This document shows positions 15,889-41,234 of a stretch of DNA of 60,000 bases, one piece after another. The position numbers and the translations under genes are program-made. Each line of letters opens with the position of its first letter. Within the stretch, counting starts at the first letter, position 1. The notes below the pieces were generated by a model. The model did no database searches and had not been told where the DNA came from. It worked only from the letters and a program-made list of their open reading frames with translations. The stretch is from Stylophora pistillata (lineage: Eukaryota): positions 417,285-477,284 of the forward strand of contig NW_019218016.1 in NCBI RefSeq assembly GCF_002571385.2. The letters are read 5' to 3'.

Positions 15889-25054
<9,166 letters not shown>

Positions 25055-35381: not shown

Positions 35382-36124
35382 AGTTACCAGGTACATGTAT
35401 GGTGTTTGCTATTGTTTTGTTAAATAAATATTGATGTTTCATTGTGATGCTCTATGTAGTGAATGGGACCAAAGCTAAATTAGTTTTTAAAATTGTGACA
35501 CAGTGGGCAGAAGTTGGGTTTTTTCCCCTTTCTTGGGAGATTTAAGCATGGCATTTTCTGGAGAAATGCACTCAAGGATATCTTCACCATCCTCAAAGAG
35601 AATGTTTGTTTCTGGGAATAGAGAACCTTACATCACTCCTTTTTGGGAAAGGGATAAAATGTCCTTTTGCTTGGACTATCAAGAAATAAACATGAACCTT
35701 ATGCCTTTTTTTTTTTTGTTACTTGTCTACTCTCAAGCTTTTAGCCCTGGAACCAACACTCAGTTATTATCGTTATTATTTTTCAGGTTTAAGAGCTTCA
35801 ACCAGCCATTTGCCATCTTGCTGTGTAAAAAATAATTCTAACTATCAAAAATAAACAATTAAGAAACAGGGCAAAAATGTTGTGGTTTATTCTGTTCTAA
35901 CAAAAGTTTTGACAATTTCAGCAGCAAGTGTTAATCTAAATATTCTACAATTTCATTCATAGATGTAATCAAACATCACCACAAAAAGTTTTTTTAAGAC
36001 TTTCTCTAACCTAGCAAGTGCACTGCTGAAAATCCTATCAAACAAATTAAGATAAAAGTCCCCCTGTGAAATAATTTCTTACAACATTCAATATTTACTG
36101 AGATAAGTTTTGAATTCTGTATTG

Positions 36125-36190
36125 CCAAGTGTCATCAAACATCTCTGAGGCTTTATCAACCTTTTACAGAGATGTTGTCATATACTTTGG
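36125..36190 (-). promoter_or_regulatory. Eukaryotic SECIS element, type II
   Basis: Minus strand reads ccaaagt-at-ATGAC-aacatctctg-t-AAA-aggtt-gataa-agcct-cagagatgtt-TGAT-gac-acttgg. This gives an AUGA/GA quartet, a perfect 10-bp helix II, apical AAA, a 5-bp ministem and a helix I. Confidence 0.92.
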
Positions 36191-36251
36191 TCAAAACGTT
36201 GTGGCCTTCAATAAAATATTTGGATCACTGAAACTTGGATCCAAAGGGAAA

Positions 36252-39200
36252 TTATCCTCATCCTCCCTGAAAAAGTGTAAGATATAGATGAGTGGAAGAA
36301 AAAAATATTGTCATTTGCACATATTTTAACATGAACTAATCCCTTGTTAAACTATTTGTGGGTATCAAGTTAGATTGCAGAACTTATAACCTTGAGTAAC
36401 TTTTCAAGATGTGCAATCTAGTACAACCCTACTCTAACAGATAATTTGACCTTTTTTTTTGTTCTTACCAAGCTCAGCTTTTGCAGCTTCCAAATACTAC
36501 CTGCTAAGTATAGTGACTAATACCTGAATAGCAAACTGTTGTTGGCTGCATTTTAAAGACATCGACCTTGAATACCTGATACATACCTTGTTTAGATCCA
36601 CACCAATGTCCCCAAATTTTGTAATCTTTCCACCAAATTTCTCTGATTTTCTTGCTCTCTTTAAGTAGAGACAAAAAATTAAGACCTGCAATGCTTATAC
36701 AACATGCAGATGTTAAAAAAAAAAGGTTAAACTTCTTCAGTCTGAACTCACCGACTCCCTCATTTCTCTGTCTTTTAAATCCTTTCTGTCAGCCTGGATC
36801 TGTATACAGGTAAAACATGAGCAAAGTTTTAAACACGTACCCTATGTGAAACCCCAGTTCTATGCTCAACGATAAGAGAAATTTCCTCCTCAATATAAAT
36901 AAGAACTTTTTCTACCTTTGCTTTGATTCTTGCTTTTTCCTGGTCCTCAAATTTTTTCTTTTCTAAAACTTTCCTTCTTTCCTCTTGTAATTGTCTCTCT
37001 CTCTCTCTCTCTCTGTAAGCTGCTTTTGTTGAATAAAAATAAATACCACAAGCTTTGAGGGTTGGCATAACATTTATGACTAAGAACAAAATAATATGGC
37101 TGCACTCAAACTGCAAAGCTACCTTCGCTACATGCATGCTCCTCTAGAAGCTTAGCTATGAAAGCCATGGCATTCAAAAACTATTTCCATGATCTCATCC
37201 AATGACAAAAATTTTATCATTAAATTGATGAAAATGTCAAGTAAAAGGGAAACTTGCTTCTTGTCTGACAGAACCATAGTGCAGGCCATTGAAATTAAAG
37301 AGTAGAATTTTGCTTTGTAGCCTGAGAATTCTGCAAAATCTGATCTCCAGCAAAGAACGCATTAATTTCTGTCAATTTGGTAACCATATACATCGAGCAT
37401 TGTTGAAAAAGAACACCGTACTGTAATACTCTGAAAAAGAGGTTCATAACTCACAGGTTCAGATTTAGAGGTTACTCCTGAACTGGATCTTGAAGGAATA
37501 GTGCTGAATGAGAAAAATTAAATTAAAACACAACCTGTACAGTTTGCGTGGAGGAAAGCTTACTAATGTTAAAACGAGGGGCTTGATAATTTTAAATGCT
37601 CAAAGAGAAGGGGTACAATCTTGTGACAGAAAATTCTAATTTAAATTATGGCTAGAGAGTAAGTGTTTGTATATGTAACAACAAACTAACACACAAAGAA
37701 GCTTACTGCAATTTCTTCATTAATATTTGTTTAACAAGTTGAATATCCTCGTCTGATGGAAGCACAACGTAGTCATCATCCTTAATACAAATTCAGACAG
37801 TTCTGGTTAGTAACAGAAGAATAAAGAACTTTATTTTGTATGGCACTCCACTTAGCTAAAAGCTACTTTACAGGAAGCCCACAAATAAACATATAAAATT
37901 GCAAAACAAAAGAAAGATAAAATTTAGCTAACACTCTAAAAATTTTGAAATCTTAAAATATCTGAAAAGTGAAAGTGAAAGTGAATGATTCGATACCTTA
38001 ATAGCAGCATATCTAAGTAATCTAATTATTTATGTATCAGTACATGTGTAATTTTAAAAAGCTACGTAACTGCAATAATAACAATTTCAAAATACTACAT
38101 AACGAATACTTCTTAAAACTTCCCTTGTGCCGGCTACGGTGCGAAAGGAATCTGGTAGCGCATTCCATGTCTTTGCAGCGAAGTACCATAAAGACCTAAG
38201 ACCATGCTTGGTACTTCTTACTTTGGGCAATGAGAGCATGTTTGTGTCCCTTAAGTTATATTTTGTGTCCTTTACTTTAAGTAGGTTTACAAAGGGGGTC
38301 AGTGCCTGCTCCTAGAGGCAACTGTTTATTGTGATTAACATGTCCTGGATACAAAATTTCAAATCCGAGCCTCAATTCAGTTTTTTGAAATTTGACTCTG
38401 TGATATTGAATAGGCCATTTTACAGTTGTGTACTTAGTTGCCAAGCCTTTGATTCAGAGTGAGGCTAAAGATGACCTTGTTGCGATAGAGACCTGTATCT
38501 AGTTAGCATGATAACAAAGTGATTTACATTTGAAAGGCAGCAAGGTTTGTATCATAACTAACAAGGTCATCTCTAGCCTCACTCCCAGTTCAAAGGCTTG
38601 GCAACCAAGCACACAACTGTAAAATGGACTATTACCATATAAACTACACAGTACCTCCTGCCATCCCCAACTGAAAAGAAACTCCTGAGCTTCTGATAGC
38701 TGCCAAACTTTTGAAGAAAATGATTTGTTTTGTTTTTTGACCTTTCGGTATTTTTCGTCGGTTGGAGATTTAACTATGTTACTGGGGTTGAAAAAAAAAA
38801 AGACACAATCAAAGATGCGAAGATAATCATGTAATATCATATCAGATGATCGGTAAAACTAAATAAATCAATTAGCAAATGAAAATAACACTCAAATCCT
38901 TGAAAAATAAAGTTACTTATGGCACAACCTCCCAATACGATCCAAACAGCCCCATTCCAGAGCACTTCTCCTTATTTTTTGCTTGCCTAATATAAAATTG
39001 AAAGCATCTACTCATAGCGTAGCTTTCCCCACCAGCTATCAAACAACCTGGTTGAAGACCAGCATCAAATCTAATACAGAAAAATCATTATAGCTTTACT
39101 TTGCGAGTGTTAATAGTGTTTCTATCGCTTGTCGTGCAGTTTCACGATCATGTTTCTTACAAAGCGACTCCAGTGATGATATCAAGGCTTGTTCTCTTTC

Positions 39201-39365
39201 TCCTTCTCCAAGCTTACTTCCGCCCTGTACAAGAATATTAGATTAGAACAGCATTCGACTGTGTTGATATCAAAGGTAAAACAGTTCAGACCAAATTTGT
39301 AACAAGCTTAAGACTAGCGTAACGAAATCAAATTCAAAACCAAAACGTACCGAGTTAGAAGCCAT
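36252..39365 (-). CDS. PUB-domain plus coiled-coil protein with C-terminal Gly-Gly-Sec-Gly (predicted selenoprotein)
   Basis: Exons 39351-39365, 39100-39224, 38655-38781, 37707-37780, 37455-37503, 36916-about 37020, 36752-36799, 36587-36658, 36252-36266. PUB signature: AIETLLTLANNIVKSPTDEKYRKVKKQNKSFSSKVWQLSEAQEFLFSWGWQE. Tail: IQADRK...FGGKITKFGDIGVDLNK|GGA GGA TGA GGA TAA. The linker junction between 37455 and about 37020 is not fully resolved. Confidence 0.85.
38409..38633. mobile_element. MITE with long TIRs in an intron of the PUB gene
   Basis: aataggccattttacagttgtgtacttagttgccaagcctttga ... tcaaaggcttggcaaccaagcacacaactgtaaaatggactatt. Confidence 0.85.
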
Positions 39366-39605
39366 GTTTACTTTACTTTCTGGTGAGTCAACCTTTGTCA
39401 AAACGTCCACTCAGCATTACATGATACTTATATTCGTTGGAGTAGAACCCGCTGACTAAAGCAGGCTCGTAGCCAGGGAAGTTTTTCTCGTGTGCGCTCT
39501 CGTGAGTAATAAGACTGTAACAGTTGTTAATTTATAAATAATGTTTCGCTCTTTTTCATTGATTTGAGGAGAATGTCACGTTGAAAGCTTGATATAGAAA
39601 CAGAA

Positions 39606-41234
39606 ATGGACAAAAGGCCATTATTTCTGGGAAGGGGCCGGGGACGTGGCCGTGGGAACGAACAAAACAGTACAAAGCCGACTGGACGAAATGTTAGTGC
39701 TCTTTCATCCTCTTCAAAATGGGGAAGTTCAAGAAGCGGAGTGGCCAAAAATACAGAATCTCCCAAAACTACTGAGGTATCCAGAGAAAGACAAGAAAAG
39801 GCGAATAAAATAAAGGAATCTGCGAAAAAATATTTGGAGAAATTGGACGACGAGTTTGAAGAGTCATCCGAAGATGAAGAAATCAACGACGGTGAAATAT
39901 TGAACAAAACACTCCAAGACTACAGGAATACTTCACAAGGTATGATAAATAATGAGAAAAATACTTAAAAACTACCCAGTTATGATAAAATTGAACTTTG
40001 TTGAGAAGGAAACTTTTTTTACAGCGCTGAAATTTTGTTCATAGTTAATTTAACTCTTCCCATCAATCCCCTACCCCTTTCCCCTCATCCCCTTTGTCCT
40101 CCTCGGCCTTTAGAAATTGCAATGGAAACAATGAAGGGATTGATTGTATGGGTTAGACTGGCTTGGTAAAGACAACCAATAGGCTTATTTTGGCTTATTG
40201 TGTCATCTTCCTCGTGGGCTAACTTCTACTGGCTCAGATGGCTCTGTGAATGGTATCAACAGGCTCATCATCGGATTCTATACGTACATACTTTATTCGT
40301 CCCAAATGGGCTTCTCAGAATAAAGAAATAATTAAAACCATTTACTAATAAATGGATGAGCTTATTAACTAGTATATAGATAGCATAATCAAATTATAGT
40401 CAATTAAATAGATAAATTGAATAACAAAAACAAAAGCAATTAAGTCTCTAAAAAGTGTGAGGTAAGGCTTCTCTTCAGGAAATGTTTGAAGTCCTTTAGT
40501 GTTGGTTTCAATTTAAGAGTAGGGTCTAATGAGTTCCAGAGTTTGACAGTCCTGAAGTAGAAAGTTCTTTGTCTTGTGGTGGTTTTAAACAAAGGAATAT
40601 TTAGCATCTTGGAGTTCCTTGTTTTACACTAAGTGATGGTAGCTTTTTCGATATATTTAGAAAATAGAGTCTGGTACACACCCAGCTGTCTTACAGGTAA
40701 CCACTTTAACTCTTTAAGGATGGAGGAAACGCAGTCATATTTCCTTGAATTGCTGATGATATAGGCTGCAAAATTCTGTACTGCTTGGATCCTACTCAGG
40801 TTGTGCTCTGAGGTGTTAATTGCTTCAAACATTACAATAATATAGCTTGCTGAAGACTAAGGCATTAATTATAGTAGCTAAGGCATTTGAGTCAAAGGCA
40901 TGTTTAACTTGATTCTGCTGGTTAACTTAGACATAAATGTTTTGCTTTGGTAAATGTGATCAATTGGCTCCAAAATTTGGTTAACTTTGTTTTTCTCAGG
41001 ATCTTTACAAACGCGTGATCTAAGACAGAATGTATCTTTGTAAAACAGATTCAAGTTTTCTTACTCTATTTGGGAGATCTGTTCTATCCCTTCTTAATAG
41101 TGAGTTTGCTGCATTTATCCCCTGTAGATAATGAGGCAGACTTGACCAAAACTGCTCAGTACTTGTTTGATTCCTGCAAACCTGGCTCAAGTGTGTGCTT
41201 GATCTGCATTGCTTCCATCAAACATGTTGATGCT
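39606..41234 (+). CDS. NFXL1: NF-X1-type zinc finger protein NFXL1, first two exons only
   Basis: Exon 39606-39939 (RG-rich, then acidic EESSEDEE) plus exon 41128-41234 (...GSSVCLICIASIKHVDA), which matches the start of the NFXL1 RING-like finger CLICIASVK. Confidence 0.75.
40285..40920 (-). mobile_element. Degenerate L2/CR1-type LINE 3' fragment
   Basis: NTSEHNLSRIQAVQNFAA.II...RKYD.VS.ILKELKWLPV and downstream TFYFRTVKLWNSL. Confidence 0.8.

Follow-up and report, generated by a model that had tools for sequence, protein, structure and literature searches.

We found that a gene of the coral Stylophora pistillata encodes a small soluble protein with a PUB domain, of the kind that docks on p97/VCP, and that its TGA "stop" codon, one residue from the end of the protein, is almost certainly read as selenocysteine (Sec). 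We put the probability that this is a selenoprotein gene of a PUB-Sec family at about 0.88. The family is conserved from algae to molluscs, yet every animal copy that we found in the databases is annotated as ending at that TGA. The gene lies in a window of 60,000 nucleotides (contig NW_019218016.1, positions 417,285 to 477,284 of the forward strand), the whole stretch of DNA that was analyzed, and all positions below are those of this window. The initial annotation, made from the sequence alone, had proposed a new soluble PUB-domain selenoprotein ending Gly-Gly-Sec-Gly with a canonical SECIS. Its observation was confirmed, as all of the sequence features are where it had placed them, whereas its interpretation was supported only in part, as described below.

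The gene has nine exons on the minus strand and ends in a coding exon of only 15 nt, GGA GGA TGA GGA TAA, which follows an acceptor ...tttttcag; the preceding exon ends ...GAT CTA AAC AAG|gtatgt (Table 1). A different last exon, or a transcript ending before the SECIS, had been named in advance as grounds for rejecting the proposal. The last junction was examined in assembled polyA RNA contigs, and contigs from three RNA runs (X11, X14 and X1) join exon 8 to exon 9. In X14, a single 611-nt contig carries this joint and the two upstream of it at the same depth (134.4) and runs on through the 3'UTR to 35872, although in another run, X13, the contig retains the last intron. Six of the other seven junctions were also seen, so that seven of eight are supported by contigs from three studies plus X1. 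The e5/e6 junction was not read in the RNA runs because the repeat at 36983-37022 was masked, but it is supplied, in frame, by a transcript that is 96-100% identical to the window (L009). The first 111 nt of L009 do not match the window and put the upstream ORF out of frame; we take this as a chimeric or variant end and did not pursue it. A T10 loose end and an AATAAA place the poly(A) site downstream of the SECIS. The TGA begins 7 nt after the last exon junction, so by the usual rule it would not trigger nonsense-mediated decay.

Table 1. Features of the PUB-Sec gene in the 60,000-nt window.
Positions	Strand	Feature	Support
39351..39365	-	Exon 1, coding part (ATG at 39365; M-A-S-N-S)	Junction 39351/39224 in four runs; same N-terminus in the Pocillopora orthologue P0056
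39100..39224	-	Exon 2, N-terminal helices of the PUB domain; minor out-of-frame alternative donor at 39161	Junctions 39100/38781 and 39161/38781
38655..38781	-	Exon 3, core of the PUB domain	Pfam PF09409; RNA junctions
37707..37780	-	Exon 4, end of the PUB domain	Junctions 38655/37780 and 37707/37503; aligns to orthologues
37455..37503	-	Exon 5, Ser-rich linker; in-frame alternative acceptor at 37491 in transcript L009	Junction 37707/37503; L009 mapping and sequence
36916..37019	-	Exon 6, start of the long helix; acceptor from L009 (CCT|CTT); as assembled, 2 nt out of frame with exon 5	L009 junction and sequence; donor junction 36916/36799; translation of the open frame
36994..37013	-	(GA)10 microsatellite inside exon 6	(GA)6 in L009 keeps the frame
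36752..36799	-	Exon 7, helix, conserved Q-I-x-A-D-R motif	RNA junctions; family alignment
36587..36658	-	Exon 8, conserved tail ...KFGGKITKFGDIGVDLNK	RNA junctions; family alignment
36252..36266	-	Exon 9, coding part: Gly-Gly-Sec-Gly-stop	Junction 36587/36266; same mini-exon in five animal orthologues
36258..36260	-	TGA read as selenocysteine	TGA, GGN and a stop (Arg-stop in the alga) in nine loci
36125..36189	-	Type II SECIS element	Rfam SECIS_1; fold; orthologous SECIS elements
35865..36251	-	3'UTR; AATAAA at 35891-35886; poly(A) site near 35865	Contigs covering 35865/35872/35885-36268; T10 loose end at 35865

We next analyzed the SECIS. The element matches Rfam SECIS_1 over the full model at 32 bits, with an E of 3e-4 for 1 kb and of 0.02 for the whole window, in which it is the only SECIS hit. 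The score is 3 bits under Rfam's gathering score of 35. The element folds into AUGA, a perfect 10-bp helix, unpaired UAAA, a 5-bp ministem and UGAU, with an energy of -21.1 kcal/mol (z = -3.6), and the AUGA starts 76 nt after the TGA. The genome also has the means to decode Sec, since it contains two tRNA-Sec genes at 77.8 bits and, on another contig, a separate canonical SELENOS gene with its own TGA.

To find relatives, exons were searched singly, and full-length analyses were done on orthologues, mainly the Pocillopora protein P0056, rather than on a joined model of the window gene. A Pfam search with exon 3 alone gave PUB (PF09409) at 52.2 bits (E 5.8e-14) against a cut-off of 34.3, and eight full-length family members scored 55-75 bits; exons 2, 4, 6 and 8 gave nothing meaningful. 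A phmmer search with exon 3 found proteins of about 200 residues that all end at a Gly run, and further searches added members. Orthologues in corals, Nematostella, two annelids, four molluscs and unicellular eukaryotes share the PUB domain, a long helix and a tail ...F-x-D-I-G-V-D-L-N-x-G-G (F-x-D-I-G-V-D-L-N-x-G-G-G in the family alignment). There was no vertebrate member among the hits obtained. The database proteins are named uncharacterized, PUB domain-containing, PNGase-like or UBXN6-like, and all stop at the Gly run, confirming the expectation that standard annotation truncates the protein at the TGA. A search with the C-terminal 60 residues alone found only family members plus two intron-read-through fragments and no link to another family, and a search of the ESM Atlas with the C-terminal part gave no usable hit.

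We then asked whether the orthologues keep the TGA-GGN-stop ending and the SECIS, the absence of both having been set out beforehand as a result that would count against the proposal. The DNA after the annotated ends reads GGT GGA GGA TGA GGA TAA in Pocillopora, GGC GGT GGA TGA GGT TAG in Nematostella, GGA GGC TGA GGT TAA in Owenia, GGG GGA GGA TGA GGT TAA in Liolophura and GGT GGA TGA GGT TAG in Potamilus. Two protist metagenome contigs read ...TGA GGT TAA, and one MMETSP alga reads ...GGG TGA GGG CGG TAG. Thus, together with the window, nine loci read as DNA, from cnidarians, annelids, molluscs and protists, keep TGA, then GGN, then stop or, in the alga, Arg-stop. One fusion of thioredoxin and PUB ends ...GGA TGA TAA instead, with no Gly after the TGA. 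Five animal loci, including the window, carry a SECIS 46-100 nt downstream. The four orthologous elements, each the only SECIS hit in its locus, score 38.5 (above Rfam's cut-off), 23.9, 23.5 and 24.6 bits; their helix sequences differ but the pairing is kept, and 11 of 14 helix pairs show compensatory changes. Rfam found no SECIS in Owenia, in the two protist contigs or in the alga, but it also missed one for the canonical SELENOS of this genome, so this is weak evidence. A Cys aligned at the Sec position was also looked for, and none was seen among about 40 family members retrieved, all of which stop at the Gly run; as these searches were restricted in length and in number of hits, absence is not shown and the existence of Cys forms is left undecided.

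With regard to architecture, an AlphaFold model shows PUB at residues 10-115 with pLDDT above 90, a helix at 132-180 and a disordered tail at 181-205. The maximum Kyte-Doolittle mean over 19 residues was 0.3-1.57 in 18 family members, and these have no transmembrane segment and no conserved Cys, supporting the claim that the protein is soluble. A profile search of the PDB matched only PUB domains and nothing for the helix or tail. The best matches were the solved PUB domains of NGLY1/PNGase and UBXN6/UBXD1, with E from 3e-15 to 4e-12, including 2HPL, the PNGase PUB domain bound to the p97 tail. PUB domains bind the C-terminal HbYX tail of p97 (PMC10641518). In searching for the coral p97, CDC48_N gave no hit at 1e-5, and a first CDC48 candidate turned out to be a different AAA protein ending ...GVHSI; p97 itself was found on another contig and ends ...DDDLYS. 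A complex prediction of PUB (residues 1-118 of P0056) with this coral p97 tail returned 0.20 against a mark of 0.34, with controls not run, and counts neither for nor against binding.

The claim of novelty needed narrowing. The initial annotation did not recognize the family among described animal selenoproteins and had allowed that a family already catalogued would overturn novelty alone. PMC7539508 (Jiang et al. 2020) lists "PUB: PUB domain-containing protein" among algal selenoprotein families, where it is rare, without calling it new. Its list of 19 families also reported in animals does not include PUB, and a 2012 survey of six invertebrates, Nematostella among them, does not list it either. 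We found no other paper on the family. The source of the algal entry was not found: the supplement and two other algal papers do not mention it. The MMETSP transcript found here has the same PUB, helix and ...DIGVDLNKGGG-TGA-GGG tail, and is very probably of the same family; the paper gives the name only, with no sequence, Sec position or source reference that we could read, and since our transcript was not compared with its sequences, membership in that algal family is not settled.

Among known proteins, SELENOS (VIMP) is a p97/VCP adaptor with a long helix followed by a disordered tail ending Gly-Gly-Sec-Gly (PMC10641518), with the penultimate Sec in a tiny last coding exon and a SECIS in the 3'UTR. 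However, SELENOS is membrane-anchored and binds the p97 N-domain through a VIM, whereas a PUB domain binds the opposite, C-terminal end of p97. SELENOK has Sec near the C-terminus in a Gly-rich disordered tail with no conserved Cys partner, and human SELENOK ends GGUGR, as the algal member here ends GGGUGR, but SELENOK is a single-pass membrane protein with no PUB domain. Compared with NGLY1/PNGase and UBXN6/UBXD1, whose PUB domains explain the database names "PNGase" and "UBXN6-like", the present protein has no transglutaminase or PAW domains, no UBX and no VIM, and is only about 205 residues long with a family-specific helix and a Sec tail. Thioredoxin reductase also has a penultimate Sec followed by Gly on a flexible C-terminal arm, Gly-Cys-Sec-Gly. 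The present tail has no adjacent Cys and the protein has no flavoprotein domain; a redox partner, if there is one, must be supplied in trans or by the thioredoxin domain found together with PUB in two fusion proteins, P0083 and P0087. P0083 has a WCGPC site and the family tail.

Taken together, these data suggest that this is a genuine selenoprotein gene, the coral member of an old eukaryotic family. What the analysis itself established is the architecture of a protein of about 200 residues (an N-terminal PUB domain, a short disordered linker, one long helix and a conserved flexible tail ending Gly-Gly-Sec-Gly), a spliced, polyadenylated mRNA with a SECIS in its 3'UTR, conservation of the TGA-Gly-stop ending and of the SECIS across phyla, and tRNA-Sec in the genome. 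That the SECIS recruits the Sec-insertion machinery, so that the UGA is decoded as Sec, is inferred from established knowledge; there is no protein-level evidence of Sec, as selenium in the protein was not measured. That the PUB domain docks on the C-terminal Leu-Tyr-X tail of p97/VCP is inferred from the domain and seems more likely than not, and docking would hold the Sec tail at the D2 face of the ATPase, where threaded substrates emerge. It is speculative, and about an even chance, that the lone Sec, with no conserved Cys partner in the chain, works as a tethered redox nucleophile on p97 clients or partners, analogous to the Sec tails of SELENOS and SELENOK. The fusions of the same PUB-plus-tail module to a thioredoxin domain in protists point the same way. 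The p97 binding and the redox role of the tail proposed in the initial annotation stand as inferences only.

We considered whether the copy in this reference colony is a broken allele. The initial annotation had not noticed that, as assembled, the (GA)10 run is 20 nt long and puts exon 6 2 nt out of frame with exons 1-5; both candidate acceptors, 37022 and 37019, give the same shifted frame. If the run is real, the product would stop about 20 codons into exon 6, and this individual or haplotype would make no Sec protein from this copy, although the family is real. The gene is single-copy in the assembly, and the RNA contigs break at the repeat, as expected if its length varies among samples. 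However, L009 has (GA)6 in frame, the Pocillopora protein reads straight through this point, exons 6-9 are at high depth in four runs, and dinucleotide runs are a classic site of assembly error. Thus, we take the frameshift to be an assembly error or a microsatellite allele, not the normal state of the gene, and consider a broken copy unlikely. The idea that the TGA is an ordinary stop and the hairpin a chance look-alike has in its favor that all annotation pipelines stop there and that the window SECIS is under Rfam's cut-off. It is close to refuted, given the five animal SECIS elements at the same place with compensatory changes and the nine loci with the conserved ending, whose chance we estimate at roughly (1/16)x(3/64) per locus if the sequence were untranslated.

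It is also doubtful, though possible, that the PUB domain does not serve p97 but, as in HOIP/RNF31, binds PUB-interacting motifs of other proteins, so that the Sec tail would act in a pathway unrelated to p97 or ERAD. The profile does hit RNF31 PUB domains weakly (E about 0.2-0.3), the p97 complex prediction gave no answer, and no p97 interaction was assayed, but the matches to the p97-binding domains of NGLY1 and UBXN6 are better by far (RNF31, 0.24), the PUB signature residues N48, P53 and K57 (numbered as in P0056) are invariant or nearly so in the family, and the coral p97 keeps a Leu-Tyr-X end. A divergent SELENOS or SELENOK that lost its membrane anchor seems very improbable. The G-G-U-G end is the same, the coral SELENOS, which ends ...GGGGUG, has the same kind of mini terminal exon (...GGA GGA TGA GGT TAA), and both proteins have a long helix followed by a disordered tail. 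Nevertheless, eight family members gave no hit to Pfam Selenoprotein_S (PF06936) or SelK_SelG (PF10961) even at E up to 10, a transmembrane segment is lacking, and a canonical SELENOS exists separately. In addition, the two SECIS elements are unlike in sequence and in distance from the TGA (about 570 nt against 76 nt), and the D-I-G-V-D-L-N motif is absent from the SELENOS exons that we read.

The list of animal selenoprotein families has changed very little for more than a decade. Because every animal copy that we found is truncated at the TGA and misnamed in public databases, selenoproteome counts for corals, anemones, annelids and molluscs are probably one short, and the fusions with thioredoxin suggest a redox partner that can be tested. 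What the penultimate Sec of the ERAD proteins SELENOS and SELENOK actually does is still unsettled. It is about as likely as not that the PUB-Sec protein represents an undescribed and ancient animal selenoprotein family, present in Cnidaria, Annelida, Mollusca and unicellular eukaryotes, and a third, soluble, Sec-tailed p97 cofactor, docking at the D2 (exit) face of p97 rather than the N-domain. A lone selenocysteine would then sit where unfolded substrates emerge, which would strengthen the link between Sec tails and p97 and give a small, tractable soluble model, easier to study than the membrane-bound proteins, for what the Sec tails of SELENOS and SELENOK do.

The gene is spliced. To characterize it, we searched its exons one at a time, without joining them into one protein for any search or fold, and used orthologous proteins retrieved by database searches for all full-length work. 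The minus strand carries a nine-exon gene, whose coding exons are listed in the table together with the other features described here. The last coding exon is exactly GGA GGA TGA GGA TAA, preceded by ...tttttcag, and exon 8 ends ...GAT CTA AAC AAG|gtatgt, so that the two are joined in phase 0, as the initial annotation had stated. Exon 3 alone matched the Pfam PUB profile at 52.2 bits (cut-off 34.3, E 5.8e-14). Downstream of the TGA, a stretch matched Rfam SECIS_1 over the whole model at 32 bits, where the gathering score is 35, with an E-value of 3e-4 for 1 kb. In a scan of all 60 kb on both strands it was the only SECIS hit (E 0.02). It folds as AUGA, a perfect 10-bp helix, unpaired UAAA, a 5-bp ministem and UGAU, with an energy of -21.1 kcal/mol and a z of -3.6 against shuffles, which is a type II SECIS. 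Its AUGA begins 76 nt after the TGA.

Coordinates of the features (positions in the window unless another sequence is named)
Feature	Coordinates	Strand
Exon 1 (coding)	39365-39351	-
Exon 2 (coding)	39224-39100	-
Exon 3 (coding)	38781-38655	-
Exon 4 (coding)	37780-37707	-
Exon 5 (coding)	37503-37455	-
Exon 6 (coding)	37019-36916	-
Exon 7 (coding)	36799-36752	-
Exon 8 (coding)	36658-36587	-
Exon 9 (coding)	36266-36252	-
GT..AG joints seen in RNA contigs	39351/39224, 39100/38781, 38655/37780, 37707/37503, 36916/36799, 36752/36658, 36587/36266	-
Alternative donor inside exon 2 and its acceptor	39161 / 38781	-
In-frame alternative acceptor in exon 5	37491; transcript L009:430-480	-
Candidate acceptors of exon 6	37022 or 37019	-
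(GA)10 run in exon 6	37013-36994	-
Stretch masked in the contig mapping	36983-37022	
SECIS element	36189-36125	-
AATAAA	35891-35886	-
T10 loose end	35865	
Inverted-repeat element of intron 3	38320-38742	
Convergent transcript (3' part)	35784-35877	+
Divergent gene	~39607 onward	+
Palindromic hairpin	22299-22459	
Canonical SELENOS gene of this coral	assembly G000, contig C394:131563-139065 (L016-L018)	
Gene of the thioredoxin-PUB fusion P0083	L013:32-1066	
rRNA fragments, Nematostella scaffold DS469573	L002:1-1423	

We next asked whether this gene model is supported by transcripts. Logan contigs of three polyA RNA-seq runs, labelled coral metagenome and from three studies, plus run X1, were aligned to positions 35500-39700. 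They showed seven GT..AG joints, including the junction between exons 8 and 9, whose confirmation by RNA-seq the initial annotation had set as a check; this junction was seen in runs X11, X14 and X1. In X14, one 611-nt contig carries the last three joints at the same depth (134.4) and runs on to 35872, so that it includes both the TGA and the SECIS. A T10 loose end together with an AATAAA places the poly(A) site downstream of the SECIS. Minor forms were also seen. An alternative donor in exon 2 was used in three runs at a depth comparable to that of the main junction; by our reading of the sequence it shifts the frame and gives an early stop, so it is an unproductive isoform. A contig in run X13 retains the last intron. 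Intron 3 holds an inverted-repeat element whose RNA contig depth is in the thousands to tens of thousands, with many loose ends, and which looks like a high-copy transcribed repeat (MITE/SINE-like). Elsewhere in the window, a palindromic hairpin hits the plant MIR families MIR5512 and MIR7504 on both strands at 60-67 bits, below their cut-offs, and is probably a MITE-like inverted repeat rather than a microRNA.

The gene lies between two neighbors. A very highly expressed convergent plus-strand transcript ends with a poly(A) tail at 35877, and its 3' end overlaps that of the PUB-Sec gene by about 13 nt; by synteny with the annotated Pocillopora locus it is ribosomal protein S3. A divergent gene starts about 240 nt upstream of the PUB-Sec ATG and has a Gly/Arg-rich N-terminus. 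By synteny it is an NFX1-type zinc-finger gene in Pocillopora and Nematostella, so the head-to-head pair is conserved.

A defect in the assembled gene had been missed by the initial annotation. The junction between exons 5 and 6 was not reported by the contig mapping because the repeat there was masked. In the window the repeat is (GA)10, and with either candidate acceptor exon 6 is 2 nt out of frame with exon 5 and would stop after about 20 codons. We then compared a Logan mRNA contig, L009, which is 96-100% identical to the window exon by exon. It joins ...GAA CCT|CTT ACA and has (GA)6, which is in frame and reads on to ...AAC AAG GGA GGA TGA GGA TAA. L009 also uses the in-frame alternative acceptor 12 nt into exon 5, so that its product reads ...KKLQ-SSSGV instead of ...KKLH-TIPSR-SSSGV. 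The Pocillopora protein likewise reads straight through the repeat, and the gene is single-copy in the 398-Mb, 5513-contig assembly. The RNA contigs break at the repeat, suggesting that its length varies among colonies. We judge an assembly error or a microsatellite allele to be far more likely than a dead gene, although we had no means of testing this and the site needs resequencing.

We next examined the family to which the protein belongs. A phmmer search with exon 3 against 1.8 billion representatives gave 50 hits, of which the full-length ones are proteins of about 165-230 residues with PUB, a charged helix and a tail ...S-R-A-R-x-x-K-F-G-x-x-x-x-x-F-x-D-I-G-V-D-L-N-x-G-G-G. They all end at the Gly run. 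Two further searches added corals (Pocillopora, Acropora, Orbicella, Porites, Desmophyllum), Nematostella, Haliotis, and many metatranscriptome and MMETSP proteins. The abalone orthologues (P0075 and P0076, Haliotis) end ...KKFENKGGG and lack the D-I-G-V-D-L-N segment, suggesting a skipped or mis-called penultimate exon, or a lineage-specific shortening of the tail. A cluster look-up named Paralvinella and Owenia (annelids), and Potamilus, Liolophura and Patella (molluscs). All are called hypothetical, uncharacterized, PUB domain-containing, PNGase or UBXN6-like, and none is annotated with Sec. In an alignment of 15 sequences, the PUB signature and the tail were the conserved parts.

Then, we asked whether the codons that follow the annotated ends of these proteins are consistent with Sec, and fetched the DNA of each locus.

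Ends of the coding sequence in orthologous loci read as DNA
Locus	Organism or source	End of coding sequence
L001	Pocillopora verrucosa	ag/GGT GGA GGA TGA GGA TAA
L002	Nematostella	ag/GGC GGT GGA TGA GGT TAG
L003	Owenia	ag/GGA GGC TGA GGT TAA
L004	Liolophura	ag/GGG GGA GGA TGA GGT TAA
L005	Potamilus	ag/GGT GGA TGA GGT TAG
L006	protist, intron-less metagenome contig	...GGA TGA GGT TAA
L007	protist, intron-less metagenome contig	...AAA TGA GGT TAA
L011/L012	MMETSP alga	...GGG GGC GGG TGA GGG CGG TAG
L013	thioredoxin-PUB fusion	...GGT GGA TGA TAA

The mini terminal exon, the TGA, one Gly codon and a second stop are therefore kept from cnidarians to lophotrochozoans, and the TGA-Gly ending extends beyond animals; in the fusion L013 the TGA is followed directly by TAA. 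Rfam found a SECIS, as the only SECIS hit of each locus and 46-100 nt after the TGA, in Pocillopora (38.5 bits, above the cut-off), Nematostella (23.9), Liolophura (23.5) and Potamilus (24.6). Each folds as AUGA, helix, AA-containing loop, ministem and UGAU, with different helix sequences, and of the 14 predicted pairs, 11 keep pairing through double changes. Rfam found none in Owenia, the protist contigs or the alga, but it also found none for the genuine SELENOS of this genome, so that absence weighs little. The genome has two tRNA-Sec genes at 77.8 bits. At the Nematostella locus, fragments of 18S and 5.8S rRNA, with a run of N, lie about 1.6 kb or more upstream of the PUB-Sec gene, which is either an rDNA fragment or an assembly oddity. 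The selenoprotein reading was to be abandoned, by the terms laid down in the initial annotation, if orthologues lacked both the TGA-GGN-stop pattern and the SECIS. Taken together, these data show that orthologues have both. The observation made in the initial annotation is thus confirmed, and its interpretation is supported in part: the selenoprotein reading strongly so, whereas the function is plausible but inferred and the claim of novelty was too broad.

With regard to novelty, one paper, 'The algal selenoproteomes' (PMC7539508), lists 'PUB: PUB domain-containing protein' among 42 algal selenoprotein families, and places PUB among the least widely distributed and not among its three new families. 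The same paper lists 19 families also reported in animals, and PUB is not one of them. A 2012 survey of six invertebrates, including Nematostella, lists 21 families without it. The Nematostella SelS of that survey lies on scaffold_211 and is probably not this gene, which lies in a 997-kb scaffold, although this mapping is a guess. No other description was found in the literature searched, which omits most subscription papers, so that a prior description is not excluded. The claim is therefore better worded as unreported in animals and named only in an algal catalogue. We conclude that the family is catalogued by name in algae, whereas the animal members, the Sec position, the conserved tail and the p97 link appear undescribed and unannotated.

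We also considered whether the protein is a member of the SELENOS or SELENOK families. In outline it would work like SELENOS, as a p97 adaptor with a long helix and a G-G-U-G end, and the coral's own SELENOS, on contig C394, also has a mini last exon, which reads GT GCA GGA GGC GGA GGA TGA GGT TAA. However, the protein is not a SELENOS or SELENOK member, since there is no Pfam hit at E up to 10 and no membrane anchor; by profile it is a PUB-domain protein. The SECIS-like element of the coral SELENOS (AUGAC...AAA...UGAU) is unrelated in sequence and lies about 570 nt downstream, although we identified it by eye and Rfam did not confirm it.

Finally, we examined the architecture of the protein and its likely mechanism. 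An AlphaFold model of the Pocillopora orthologue gave a confident PUB domain (residues 10-115, pLDDT above 90), followed by a disordered linker, one long helix (132-180) and a disordered tail (181-205). No member has a hydrophobic stretch long enough for a membrane helix. No Cys is conserved, and two members have none at all. The family profile matched the solved PUB domains of NGLY1 (including 2HPL) and UBXN6 at E from 3e-15 to 4e-12, matched RNF31 only at about 0.2-0.3, and matched nothing else. PUB domains bind the last residues of p97 (Leu-Tyr-Gly, the HbYX motif) and place cofactors at the D2 face, and SELENOS/VIMP is a p97 adaptor through a VIM in a long helix (PMC10641518). The coral p97 gene is on contig C190 and ends ...DDGDDDLYS. 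A complex prediction of PUB with the p97 tail gave no answer, and we do not count it either way. The UGA begins 7 nt after the last exon junction, and by the usual rule the mRNA should escape nonsense-mediated decay when Sec insertion fails. What follows on function is inference. Proteins in which a thioredoxin domain is fused to PUB, P0083 and P0087 (Parachlorella kessleri), support a redox role by the fusion argument; P0083 has a WCGPC site and the same helix and ...DIGVDLNKKGG tail, and may point to the family's redox partner. Our reading of the domain evidence is therefore that the protein is a soluble p97 cofactor that holds a lone Sec on a flexible arm near the D2 exit.
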